From the sequence record LC727699.1: a DNA stretch of 64,000 bases, one strand, 5' to 3'. The notes beneath the pieces were generated by a model that was given only the letters and a program-made list of their open reading frames with translations, was not told where the DNA came from and searched no databases. This document shows, piece by piece, positions 11,412 to 62,660 of the stretch. The translations under genes were made by a program, and so were the position numbers. Within the stretch, counting starts at the first letter, position 1; each line of letters starts with the position of its first letter.

Positions 11412-12582
11412 ACTAGGTAAACGTGAAATTGATCTAACCCTATTAGGGCATACTGGTTTAGATCCTTGGTATGGCACTACCTCATCTGCACGGGGTGCTA
11501 TGTTTGTAACACATATTGGCCAGGCACCAGAAGTAAATGGAAATGAATCACGTTATTTCCTAACGGGTGCTGAATTAGAGTATGCCAAGTATACACATGA
11601 TGTTCGTTTTCCTGAGGATTGTCGTGTACTACATGTTCTTAGAAAATATCCAACGGGTATTGGTAAAGACAGTATTAGATCTAACCCGGTAACAACTATT
11701 ATCTACGAAAACTATTTTGACAAATATAAAACCATTGGTGTCTTACATGTTCCCGAGTACATGAGTCATCACCAAGACTTTGGTTATGAACTTGTAAAGA
11801 ATCGAGAAGTGTGGGAAACCATTGCCCCAAATGAAATGTTCTCTAAAGACACAGTGATTGCACAGTCTGGTGCAGTTAAGAAAGACGGTACTTTAGGGAT
11901 GGGTGTTAATGCTAATGTTGTATTCCTATCTGCCGCTGGTACCATTGAAGATGGATTCGTAGCTAATAAGAATTTCCTTAAAAGGATGATGCCAACTAGT
12001 TATAGCACGGCTGTAGCTAATGCTGGTAGGAAAGCTTTCTTCTTAAACATGTATGGCGATGATAAGGTCTATAAACCATTCCCAGACATTGGCGATGTTA
12101 TCCGACCAGATGGTGTAATCTTCGCCATCCGTGACCATGATGATGATCTAGCTCCTGCCGAGATGACTCCTAGGGCACTTCGTACACTAGATAGAACTTT
12201 CGATAGAGCTGTTATTGGCACACCTGGTGCGAAGGTTATTGATATTGATATTTGGCGTGATGAGCGTGTAAATCCATCCCCTACTCCAACAGGAATGGAT
12301 GCACAACTAGTTAAATATCATACTCATCTTAGCAGTTATTATCGAGAACTATTAAAGATCTATCGTGGTCTATTAGCACGTCGTAAAGATGATCTACATA
12401 TCACTGAGGAATTTGAACGTCTTATTGTAACTGCACAGATGTTCCTACCTCAACCTGATAATGTCCGTAAACTATCTCGATTCTATCGACTAGACCCACT
12501 AGATGAATGGCGAGTCGAAGTAACTTACAAAGCCCAAAAGATGCCTGCTGGTGCTTTCAAGATGACTGATTTTCATGGTGGT
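11404..12582 (+). CDS. nvRNAP beta subunit C-terminal part, exon 1 (phiKZ gp71 homolog)
   Basis: RpoB-like motifs (SSARGAMF, GTIEDG); ends ...KMTDFHGG, the first half of the RpoB GDK-x-x-x-RHG-x-KG motif. Confidence 0.9.
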
Positions 12583-60664: not shown

Positions 60665-60940
60665 ATGGGTGAATATACACAGAATGGTATTCGTCATTTT
60701 CGTCCGGATGATACCGAAGATACCTTTTATATCTTGGGTGATTGTTATGTAGCCAATACTATCGCCGATATTATCGAGATGGCAACTAAGAAATGGGGTG
60801 ATGGTATTACTCTTGATATGATTAATATCAGTACTGAATATATTCATACAAGTTGTCTAGGGTATGATGAGTACGACCCCAGCGATTACAGTAATTATTT
60901 ATGCATCTCTCGTGTTAGGGAAACATCGCTGGTTAAATAA
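60665..60940 (+). CDS. Hypothetical acidic protein (91 aa)
   Basis: GAGGA SD; followed by a hairpin. Confidence 0.7.
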   Translation: MGEYTQNGIRHFRPDDTEDTFYILGDCYVANTIADIIEMATKKWGDGITLDMINISTEYIHTSCLGYDEYDPSDYSNYLCISRVRETSLVK

Positions 60941-61105
60941 ATTAACGACATAATCCCTCTCCTTCGGGAGAGGGCATTTATTCAGTTAAACTTTTAAGAA
61001 TAAAAGAATTAGCCCTACTGTTACAGCAGTAGGGCTATATGCCGTTGAGTAAAAAATACTCAACATTTTCGCCCAAGTGGGCTTGGATTAACAAGAGGAA
61101 CAATC

Positions 61106-61411
61106 ATGTTAATTCCAGTTACCGCTAACAATGTTAGCCCTGACCTGCACAGAATGCAGGAAGTAGGTTTCTTTTTCAAGAGACCCGATGGATCAACCCA
61201 TAGCATGTCGGTTGCGAAAACGCAAGCCGATAATGTTATCCAATGTCGAGATCGTAGAGGTAACTTCATTGGTTATTGGGCTGGCCCTACAATAGGATAC
61301 GTCAACAACGCAGGTTTAGCCGTATCCATCAACCCCTTCGACAATTTCATAGTAACATACACTGACATGGATCAGAAGAAGTTCTATGTAACCGAAAGGA
61401 GAAGCCTATGA
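61106..61411 (+). CDS. Hypothetical protein (101 aa)
   Basis: GAGGA SD; upstream hairpin-TATG element at 61011-61040. Confidence 0.7.
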   Translation: MLIPVTANNVSPDLHRMQEVGFFFKRPDGSTHSMSVAKTQADNVIQCRDRRGNFIGYWAGPTIGYVNNAGLAVSINPFDNFIVTYTDMDQKKFYVTERRSL

Positions 61412-61419
61412 TAAACAAC

Positions 61420-61460
61420 CCCTCTCCTAAAGGAGAGGGACTTATCTGAATTCTTTTTTT
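61420..61460 (+). terminator. Terminator CCCTCTCC-TAAA-GGAGAGGG plus T tract
   Basis: 8-bp stem after stop 61411. Confidence 0.7.
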
Positions 61461-61915
61461 GTTTAAGTGAGAGCCGCCCGCTAAAGCGGCTCCCAAGTGG
61501 AGTTAAGTCTCCCGCTAAAGAGAAACTCCAGAATACATGGGGTAGCGACTCCTCATGTAGATATCCTAATTAATCTCTTTAGCTAGTAATCAATACCCGT
61601 TATCACTCGTTGATAATTGATTTGTTTATTAACTAATTTGACTTAATCAGAATGATCAATACATATTGTTAATAATCTAGTATATTATTACCAGTATCAT
61701 TGAGTAATACTGGTAATCAAATATTACTCATGAATCTTACCTAATGTGGAACTGAGGAATCGGATCGCCCCGTAGGGGCTTTTATTTCATAATAAACTAT
61801 ACCGAAGGTATATCCTTATTCTAATAATAAACAATATTAGCATTATTCTAATAGCGTTAGCTAATACATACTGTCTCCCTAAAAGGAGACACAGTATAGA
61901 TTATATTTTTTTTAA
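61461..61915. ncRNA. Candidate structured non-coding RNA or replication origin
   Basis: No ORF; at least nine inverted repeats, repeated CCGCTAAA loops, a complementary TAGCG loop and a pseudoknot-compatible pairing; strand undetermined. Confidence 0.45.
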
Positions 61916-62021
61916 TTAAAAATAATAAGTCTAGAGATAGACTTTCTTTATGCCTTTAATACCTTCTAATTTGCTCTATAATCGATTTTATTCGTTATTC
62001 ACTAGCATATTAGCCATACGA

Positions 62022-62051
62022 CATAAAAGCCCTCCTATGAGGGCTTAAATG
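62022..62051 (-). terminator. Hairpin AAGCCCTC-CTAT-GAGGGCTT ending the minus-strand operon
   Basis: Directly after the minus-strand stop at 62054; CATAA flank. Confidence 0.65.
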
Positions 62052-62053
62052 CT

Positions 62054-62290
62054 TTATTTTTCATTAGTCGGATATAGGAGTACAATAGACTCTGCGCATA
62101 CTTTAATAACTTGGATATTTTCACTGTCATTATTTTTTGATTGTTTATTTTTAACGCAGTATTCAAATTGTTGGGATTTGAGTTTATATACGTTATTGTT
62201 CTCTTCTCCCAGTATTCCTCCAAATACCAATCCTAGGATAAATATTAATAAACCACCAATAAAGATAATATAAATATTACCATAGTACAT
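62054..62290 (-). CDS. Small membrane-anchored protein (78 aa)
   Basis: N-terminal TM segment IYIIFIGGLLIFILGLVFGGILG; AGGAG SD. Confidence 0.65.
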   Translation of the reverse strand: MYYGNIYIIFIGGLLIFILGLVFGGILGEENNNVYKLKSQQFEYCVKNKQSKNNDSENIQVIKVCAESIVLLYPTNEK

Positions 62291-62291
62291 A

Positions 62292-62660
62292 TTACATTAA
62301 CTCCTTTACATCATCTGGAATAGATTCACACCGATCTAAATCCCAGTATATATGCGTGTAATGATCTTGATTTACAATACTGATGAAATCCCCATTAGGA
62401 TCAGGTAAAGGTTTACGGATCACATCGACATAGATAGTGTAGTACAGATATAGATCACTGATAAGTTCATCGATATTGAGGTTATTACCTTCTGCATATT
62501 TACCATATTTAAAATAATGGGCTTCTTCTGCCACAGCATAACGGATTTTATCGTAATTTTGTGATGCGGCATATACACGTGCAAATAGGGGTCGATTAAA
62601 CTTTCTACATTCACTAATATTCTTTCTTAAAGTATTTACTAAATTATCAATTGCACTCAT
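62292..62660 (-). CDS. Hypothetical protein (122 aa)
   Basis: AGGT SD; ORF track. Confidence 0.7.
   Translation of the reverse strand: MSAIDNLVNTLRKNISECRKFNRPLFARVYAASQNYDKIRYAVAEEAHYFKYGKYAEGNNLNIDELISDLYLYYTIYVDVIRKPLPDPNGDFISIVNQDHYTHIYWDLDRCESIPDDVKELM

Follow-up and report, generated by a model that had tools for sequence, protein, structure and literature searches.

Three adjacent hairpins at positions 61471–61559 of a 64,000-nucleotide (nt) stretch of LC727699.1, analysed as a whole and called the window here, are nt 104–194, the 3′ half, of the published 197-nt non-coding RNA 5'UTR_PHIKZ_p40, or TU089, of Pseudomonas phage phiKZ. In the sense of this minus-strand RNA the hairpins are called A, B and C from 5′ to 3′. 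Hairpins B and C carry the same 8-nt loop, and this loop was found again, on an unrelated stem and behind a similar upstream hairpin, at a second mapped RNA 3′ end of phiKZ, T003. A two-hairpin 3′-end module with a selected loop is therefore likely to be real. We lean towards the broader view that the TU089 hairpins form a phage-specific two-part 3′-end module, which would act as a leaky non-canonical terminator and/or a nuclease-resistant cap. The element itself is already known and hence represents no new class; what is new here is modest, namely the repeated loop, the partly complementary neighbouring loop and a further copy of the module, at T003.

PhiKZ is a model nucleus-forming jumbo phage whose genome is transcribed entirely by its own two RNA polymerases, and the termination of these enzymes is poorly understood. 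TU089 is among the very few phiKZ non-coding RNAs with northern blot confirmation. A recurring loop motif at two 3′ ends that have no U-tract, each with a partly complementary upstream loop, offers a cheap mutational handle on two questions, the 3′-end signal for the phage polymerases and the role of the short RNA. If true, the loop–loop contact would be a rare tertiary RNA contact built into a phage terminator.

The hairpins lie in a published minus-strand RNA

We compared positions 61000–62300 of the window with phage genomes by BLAST and found 99.9–100% identity to phiKZ and its close relatives; the locus gave 47 full-length records, every one of them a Phikzvirus. The window is from phiKZ or from a Phikzvirus almost identical to it. 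Adding 53260 to a window position gives the position in phiKZ (NC_004629), which places the three hairpins at phiKZ 114731–114819. Positions 61380–61900 are 100% identical to phiKZ, as is the 100-nt hairpin domain. An RNA from this site was one of two phiKZ non-coding RNAs obtained by Grad-seq (Gerovac et al., 2021, mBio; PMC8545117), where Grad-seq and northern blotting showed an ~180-nt species plus longer read-through RNAs, and where the profile of the short RNA was broad, with the RNA polymerase (RNAP) and 30S fractions rather than free. Transcript ends were later mapped by ONT-cappable-seq (Putzeys et al., 2024, microLife; PMC10914365; bioRxiv 10.1101/2023.10.13.562163). Tables S3–S5 and S7 of that study give the transcription start site (TSS) of promoter P060, of the ‘middle’ class, at 114922(−) and the 3′ end T053 at 114725(−). 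TU089, with 197 nt and no gene, is listed in Table S7 as a non-coding RNA derived from a 5′ untranslated region (5′-UTR), validated by northern blot and Grad-seq, with an RNAfold energy of −65.10, and the 715-nt read-through RNA TU088 has the same start and extends to T051 (PMC10914365). In the published picture, transcription runs leftward from the middle promoter; the majority of the transcripts stop a few nt past hairpin C, and some read through for 715 nt.

These data could be placed on the window. The published promoter string, ending ...ACTAGATTATTAACAATATG, is found once, at 61662–61681 on the minus strand. The sequence of the northern probe JVO-18831 is that of the plus strand at its unique site, 61596–61624, and the probe therefore detects the minus-strand RNA. 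Folding of 61465–61662 on the minus strand gave −65.1 kcal/mol (z −5.7), which equals the published value, and the flank given for T053 in Table S4 matches the stretch of hairpin C, the 3′-terminal hairpin, a few nt downstream of which the RNA ends at 61465. Since the region is identical to phiKZ, and since 61465–61662 on the minus strand accommodates the published TSS, transcription termination site (TTS) and length as well as the northern probe and the folding energy, the hairpin RNA is TU089. The idea of a structured non-coding RNA, put forward in the initial annotation, is thus borne out by the published Grad-seq, northern and ONT-cappable-seq data, as the 197-nt RNA spans all three hairpins. 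The published descriptions call the RNA ‘two-stemmed’ or simply structured (PMC8545117, PMC10914365); these papers contain no mention of the identical loops, of the complementary third loop or of the look-alike at T003, and they assign no function. A literature search likewise found no paper on the repeated loop, its partly complementary neighbour or the T003 copy of the module, nor one that links phiKZ RNAs with kissing loops.

The hairpins had first been read on the plus strand, and this sense was wrong. As the RNA is the minus strand, the loops read UUUAGCGG (twice) and AGUCGCUA. The wobble pairs agree with the experimentally mapped strand: five are possible only in the minus sense (two in each UUUAGCGG loop and one in stem C), compared to one that is possible only in the plus sense.

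The hairpins themselves, with their 8-nt loops, were confirmed at every coordinate by reading the sequence. In the plus sense, the first has the stem 61471–61477/61486–61492 and the loop CCGCTAAA at 61478–61485, the second has the stem 61499–61504 plus 61508–61511/61520–61529 with a 3-nt bulge and again the loop CCGCTAAA, at 61512–61519, and the third has the stem 61534–61542/61551–61559 and the loop TAGCGACT at 61543–61550. RNAfold returned exactly these three hairpins on either strand, with −38.2 kcal/mol (z −4.96) on the plus strand and −41.0 kcal/mol (z −4.84) on the minus strand, and none of 200 shuffles folded as well as the real sequence. The identical loop on two different stems also held up, and the common word is in fact 10 nt long, CCCGCTAAAG. 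In the 281 kb that were scanned, comprising the window and the rest of the phiKZ genome beyond it, this 10-mer is found solely at the two hairpin loops. Between B and C, both partners have changed in two of the four pairs of the inner stem, yet the 10 nt at the loop are identical; the outer context is also common to both (UGG(G)AG ... CUC(N)CACUU). In the fold ensemble, the first outer U·G pair in the loops of B and C is closed ~95% of the time and the second ~55%, and the top of these hairpins, C-UUUAGCGG-G, may form a UAGC tetraloop on two U·G pairs, in the minus sense only. Another TAGCG, at 61852–61856, had been pointed out as well and carries no weight: the window has slightly fewer copies of this 5-mer than expected (52 observed, 64 expected), and the copy lies upstream of the TSS of the hairpin RNA, outside the transcript.

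Table 1. Positions of TU089, its parts and related hairpins (window numbering unless phiKZ is given)
Feature	Position	Strand	Description
Whole non-coding RNA TU089 / 5'UTR_PHIKZ_p40	61465–61662	minus	197/198 nt, TSS 61662 to 3′ end 61465
Promoter P060 (‘middle’ class)	61662–61710	minus	TSS is the G at 61662
5′ domain	61560–61657	minus	RNA nt 6–103; long imperfect AU-rich hairpin (predicted fold); holds the northern-probe site
Hairpin A	61534–61559	minus	RNA nt 104–129; 9 stacked positions including one A·C mismatch; loop AGUCGCUA at 61543–61550
Hairpin B	61499–61529	minus	RNA nt 134–164; 6+4 bp with 3-nt bulge; loop UUUAGCGG at 61512–61519
Hairpin C	61469–61494	minus	RNA nt 169–194; 9 bp including one G·U, which is possible solely in the minus sense; loop UUUAGCGG at 61478–61485
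Second copy of the module	phiKZ NC_004629 12005–12075	minus	Hairpin with loop GUCGCGAA, then hairpin with loop UUUAGCGG, both 9 bp
Palindromic terminator hairpin of the canonical phiKZ type	61417–61442	either	CCCTCTCC-NNNN-GGAGAGGG, then TTAT or TTTAT; terminator-like on the minus strand; fits the published motif

A second copy of the loop at T003 and 3′-end formation

The 8-mer TTTAGCGG has eight occurrences in phiKZ, which is about the expected number. In three of these cases, each in the minus sense, the word makes up the whole loop of a strong hairpin, and these hairpins are B, C and one at phiKZ 12016–12041, which has 9 bp, an unrelated stem (CCCCAUUGG/CCAAUGGGG) and the loop UUUAGCGG, and which is the mapped 3′ end T003, 12011(−). 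A 9-bp hairpin with an 8-nt loop is placed 26 nt upstream of it, and at T053 loop A lies 25 nt upstream of loop B, near the spacing at T003. The sequence AGTCGC followed by TAGCGG within 10–60 nt occurs at the T053 and T003 sites only in the 281 kb, scanned on both strands. The T003 module is kept in the more distant phage PA1C. In Brmt and fMGyn, the T003 stem shows a compensatory change from U–A to C–G and the loop UUUAGCGG is unchanged, while PA02 is without the upstream hairpin at T003, and its stem there has co-varied and bears another loop, UUAUUAAA. The initial annotation had argued for selection on the loop sequence, and this is supported by the same 8-nt loop on three unrelated stems (B, C and T003) together with the compensatory stem change at T003 in relatives. 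The joint coincidence of a whole loop, its orientation, the neighbouring loop word and the spacing is roughly estimated at below 1e-3, and the module is likely to be real.

A resemblance was also seen at the antisense mapped 3′ end T055 (phiKZ 117934–117960, minus strand), which has AGTCGCTAGGCGGCTCTC, made up of the loop A word and GGCGGCTCTC, the 3′ arm of hairpin C. It could be due to chance or be another relative of the module.

We next consider what such a module might do. In the proposed mechanism, B and C would be tandem copies of a phage-specific 3′-end stem-loop which, together with the upstream GUCGC-loop hairpin A, would make up a two-part 3′-end module used at least twice in phiKZ (T053 and T003). 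The role of this module would be that of a non-canonical, leaky terminator, of a nuclease-resistant 3′ cap or of both; it would split transcription from P060 into an abundant short RNA and the 715-nt TU088, and what recognizes its loop sequence would be a partner loop, a protein or the polymerase of the phage. Neither sterics nor energy stands in the way of pairing between loop A and loop B or C, which could tune the module, and nothing requires it. Putzeys et al. describe two read-through modes for 5′-UTR terminators of this kind (PMC10914365). Since TU088 is antisense to a well-formed plus-strand open reading frame (ORF) at 61106–61411, the module may gate antisense transcription over this ORF rather than the expression of p40.

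Hairpins A, B and C differ from the canonical phiKZ terminators (Putzeys et al., 2024; PMC10914365) in that they have neither C-rich and G-rich arms nor a TTAT tail, and in their loop of 8 nt, or UAGC tetraloop on two U·G pairs; as in those terminators, the mapped RNA 3′ end carries a GC-rich hairpin whose 3′ arm starts with GGG. By eye, none of the three fits the conserved phiKZ terminator motif CCYCCCC-HWWD-GGGRRGG-BY-TTAT. A hairpin that does fit it (61417–61442, Table 1) lies only ~25 nt past T053; TU088 passes through it and no 3′ end has been reported there, so T053 could be a processed end and not a termination site.

Several further points weigh against the 3′-end module as we propose it. 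It is seen at two loci only, and the flanks of T003 and T053 have no significant similarity (local alignment score of 31, with shuffles at 27 ± 5). Among weak AT-rich hairpins, moreover, loops that have an 8-mer in common are frequent across the genome. A consensus scan of 60900–62300 called six terminator-like sites and none of them is A, B or C, which have no U-tract; the tail after hairpin C is ACUUAAAC. T053 was not called intrinsic by ARNold (Table S4, PMC10914365), and because 3′ ends from ONT data cannot separate termination from processing, it could be a trimmed end. No paper after 2024 was found that tests the function of TU089. Finally, the loops never vary in 47 genomes, and this invariance weighs little, as the whole region is 96–100% identical.

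These 47 genomes fall into three haplotypes (from an alignment of 11 representative Phikzvirus genomes and a BLAST search of the 100-nt domain against all phages), which differ in the A–B linker of 3–4 nt and at one position of stem B, where a U is replaced by a G that finds a new partner in the C of the bulge; hairpin A is invariant. Searching with a covariance model for the domain of three hairpins gave no credible match in 33 jumbo-phage loci (helicase 38–62% identical), in PA1C or elsewhere in phiKZ. A metagenome scan with the three-loop DNA pattern gave one match, in a repetitive coding sequence, which is not a homologue. A pattern of the loops alone (TTTAGCGG, gap, TTTAGCGG) was also tried on IMG/VR and rejected as unspecific: it hit at least 117 chance loci, none with hairpins around the motif.

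Loop pairing, loop recognition and other explanations

We then looked at the loop pairing proposed in the initial annotation, according to which the loop of hairpin A can pair with those of B and C. This complementarity is present: UAGCGG (loop B or C) and UCGCUA (loop A) form six contiguous pairs, five Watson–Crick (WC) and one G·U, at −6.3 to −7.1 kcal/mol. Its excess over chance, however, is marginal, with a run of at least five WC pairs between random 8-nt loops in 1.4–1.6% of trials and a duplex energy as good as −6.3 kcal/mol in 2.0% of trials. At T003, the loop pair has an A·G mismatch and reaches −4.6 kcal/mol in phiKZ; only −2.7 kcal/mol is left in fMGyn, where the loop has two transitions and the partner loop is unchanged. 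Both changes are of kinds that pairing would tolerate, so these data favour neither side. That PA02 has lost the loop motif together with the partner hairpin fits a coupling of the two and is a single event. Because the loops are invariant, the region is only 0–4% diverged and no distant homologue was found, no covariation test of the loop–loop pairing is possible. Kissing, multimerization and switching are accordingly treated as hypotheses, none of which is required by the evidence.

Apart from the loops, RNA nt 80–89 (GCUAAAGAGA; 61574–61583) are perfectly complementary over 10 nt to nt 140–149 (61514–61523; the 5′ arm and loop of B). A fold in which this helix is enforced lies only 3.2 kcal/mol above the minimum free energy (MFE), and the chance of a 10-nt match within a 198-nt RNA is ~2%. 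The helix is a possible alternative conformation, and would be a different ‘two-state’ option from the one suggested for the kissing loops.

If the contact between loop A (AGUCGCUA) and loop B or C (UUUAGCGG) were itself the selected function on the minus strand, it could form an intramolecular compact lock or intermolecular dimers and chains, each RNA having two UAGCG loops and one CGCUA loop. Six-pair loop–loop complexes are stable in Mg2+, as in TAR–TAR* and the HIV DIS, and this speaks for such a contact here, as do the energy of the six contiguous pairs, the similar heights of stems A and B (9 and 10 bp), which with a 4-nt linker would allow side-by-side packing, the recurrence of the loop pairing at T003 with the same spacing, and the joint loss in PA02. 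We nevertheless consider it rather unlikely, since the chance of ~1.5–2% applies per loop pair and before counting the several pairings that could have been noticed, no covariation is available, and the pairing at T003 is broken by the mismatch and weaker still in fMGyn with no compensating change. In addition, the outermost positions of the B and C loops are mostly closed as U·G in the ensemble, and the broad Grad-seq profile, with RNAP and 30S fractions, has no obvious RNA-only multimer. Combining both ideas, a module of a 9-bp GUCGC-loop hairpin, ~25 nt and a UUUAGCGG-capped hairpin, with the loops paired as a compact polymerase-specific terminator or nuclease-proof cap at two or more ends (T003, and T053 with its second hairpin duplicated, where two acceptor loops per donor could also link molecules), is distinctly doubtful.

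Instead, the top of the UUUAGCGG hairpin, alone or together with the GUCGC loop, could be a recognition site for a protein, either an RNA-binding protein of the phage or the host or the RNA polymerase of the phage, in which case B and C would be two sites and the complementarity of loop A incidental. In favour of this, three unrelated stems carry the identical loop and there are compensatory changes in the stem, the short RNA sediments with the RNAP and 30S fractions and is not free, and two of the three copies lie exactly at mapped 3′ ends without a U-tract, as expected of a factor- or polymerase-specific signal. However, no candidate protein is known, there are only three copies in 280 kb, more distant phiKZ-like phages do not have the motif save for the T003 copy in PA1C, and PA02 dispenses with it at T003; protein recognition is hence possible without being probable. 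It is also conceivable, if improbable, that the loops have no function, a local tandem duplication of C having given rise to B, the complementarity of loop A and the match at T003 being coincidental, and the stems alone, as ordinary hairpins, stabilizing the 3′ end. The shared outer context of B and C is what a duplication predicts, 8-mers shared among the loops of different hairpins are common genome-wide (18 words among 521 hairpins, mostly AT-rich), and the overall divergence is too low to show constraint. This account is at odds with the estimated probability of ~0.01 that a pre-specified word makes up the whole loop of another GC-rich hairpin in the same orientation, to which the neighbouring GUCGC loop at the same spacing adds an estimated ~0.005, and with the inner stems of B and C, which have diverged by compensatory changes around the identical 10 nt. 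A role of the hairpins on the plus strand or as DNA, as back-up rightward terminators or, in an intergenic AT-rich region that serves for control or as an origin, as cruciforms or repeated sites for binding, would suit their location between convergent gene blocks, their folding on the plus strand and the repeat of a 10-bp word at a distance of 34 bp. This is very improbable, since plus-strand transcription as read by ONT-cappable-seq stops at T052 (~60979) and reads no further than ~61042, no plus-strand TSS or TTS is reported near the hairpins, the wobble-pair asymmetry favours the minus-sense RNA, and the third copy of the loop is again at the 3′ end of a minus-strand RNA.

Like 5′-UTR-derived small RNAs that arise by premature or conditional termination at attenuator or riboswitch-type leaders, the locus makes a short abundant RNA and a long read-through RNA from one start, a structured terminator region decides between them, and an alternative fold lies only 3.2 kcal/mol above the MFE; unlike these, the RNA has no known ligand, leader-peptide logic, conserved aptamer or Rfam match, and its ‘downstream gene’ p40 is doubtful. 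With the kissing systems (ColE1 RNA I/II, HIV-1 DIS, TAR–TAR* and the L2–L3 contact of the purine riboswitch) it shares loops of 6–8 nt with 5–6 complementary bases, and its adjacent helices, being similar in height, could lie packed against each other as in the purine riboswitch, but here the partners are on one transcript instead of on sense and antisense RNAs, and their complementarity is marginally above chance. As with the phi29 pRNA, the RNA is encoded by a phage and an interlocking of loops from different molecules is conceivable in principle, but the phage lineage is unrelated, 61465–61564 has no match to the Rfam pRNA model (E up to 10), and TU089 has a phiKZ ‘middle’ promoter, sediments with RNAP and 30S and has no link to a packaging motor; the helicase and small-ORF neighbours and the ‘middle’ promoter do not bear directly on packaging. 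The phi29 pRNA and ColE1 RNA I/II, both named in the initial annotation, may serve as analogies only.

Genomic setting and additional observations

No Rfam family of any kind matched 61465–61564 in cmscan (E up to 10), and ARAGORN found no tRNA or tmRNA genes in the window. A 6S-RNA-like mimic was considered for the co-sedimentation with RNAP; it had no model match and was left as speculation. By eye, the loops have no consistent GGA or A-rich motif of the RsmA or Hfq type. As for targets in trans, the longest complementarity of the RNA to the phiKZ genome is 13–16 nt, near chance, with the longest one in the same sense as the mRNA, and an 8-mer complement within the major head gene is at chance frequency.

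A 13-codon ORF, MRSRYPMYSGVSL, is present in the RNA (61515–61556, minus strand), starting in hairpin A, 7 nt after AGGA, and stopping at the UAG in loop B; with a start at an internal AUG in the same frame it would have 7 codons. No convincing small ORF was reported from the published screens, and the 13-codon ORF may be tied to the reported co-sedimentation with 30S subunits.

RefSeq phiKZ has no annotation at the hairpin site, which lies within a 685-bp gap flanked by the small minus-strand ORFs PHIKZ117.2 (p40) and PHIKZ117.3 (p41), directly downstream of the operon of a DnaB-like helicase; the other neighbours are small ORFs. The plus-strand ORF at 61106–61411 encodes 101 amino acids (aa), has a good Shine–Dalgarno sequence (AAGAGGA) and is annotated in many relatives, whereas RefSeq phiKZ has two short minus-strand ORFs instead, p39 and p40 (61060–61269 and 61273–61368). 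Published RNA data for this region show minus-strand transcription only. The third codon positions of p39/p40 coincide with those of the 101-aa ORF, so substitution counts cannot settle the coding strand, and the pattern (10 synonymous and 8 non-synonymous changes for the plus-strand ORF, compared to 7/7 and 3/3 for the minus-strand ORFs) does not pick one. Distant protein homologues of the 101-aa ORF were sought for the same question, and only Phikzvirus copies were found; a metagenome scan for its relatives gave none. We regard p40 as a doubtful 31-codon ORF, antisense to a better one on the plus strand.

Two further elements were seen upstream of the hairpins. A 58-nt stretch at 61774–61832, with a UUCG-capped hairpin adjoining a terminator-like stem-loop rich in GC, recurs with ~90% identity in the PA1C/PS119XW group of 300-kb phages, which is otherwise far more distant and where it likewise lies downstream of the homologue of PHIKZ117.4. 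At 61687–61717, ~25–55 nt upstream of the P060 start site, there is a hairpin with an 11-bp stem, and its 9-nt loop is reverse-complemented in FBPa36, PA7 and SL2 compared to phiKZ, a loop-inversion polymorphism in the promoter region.

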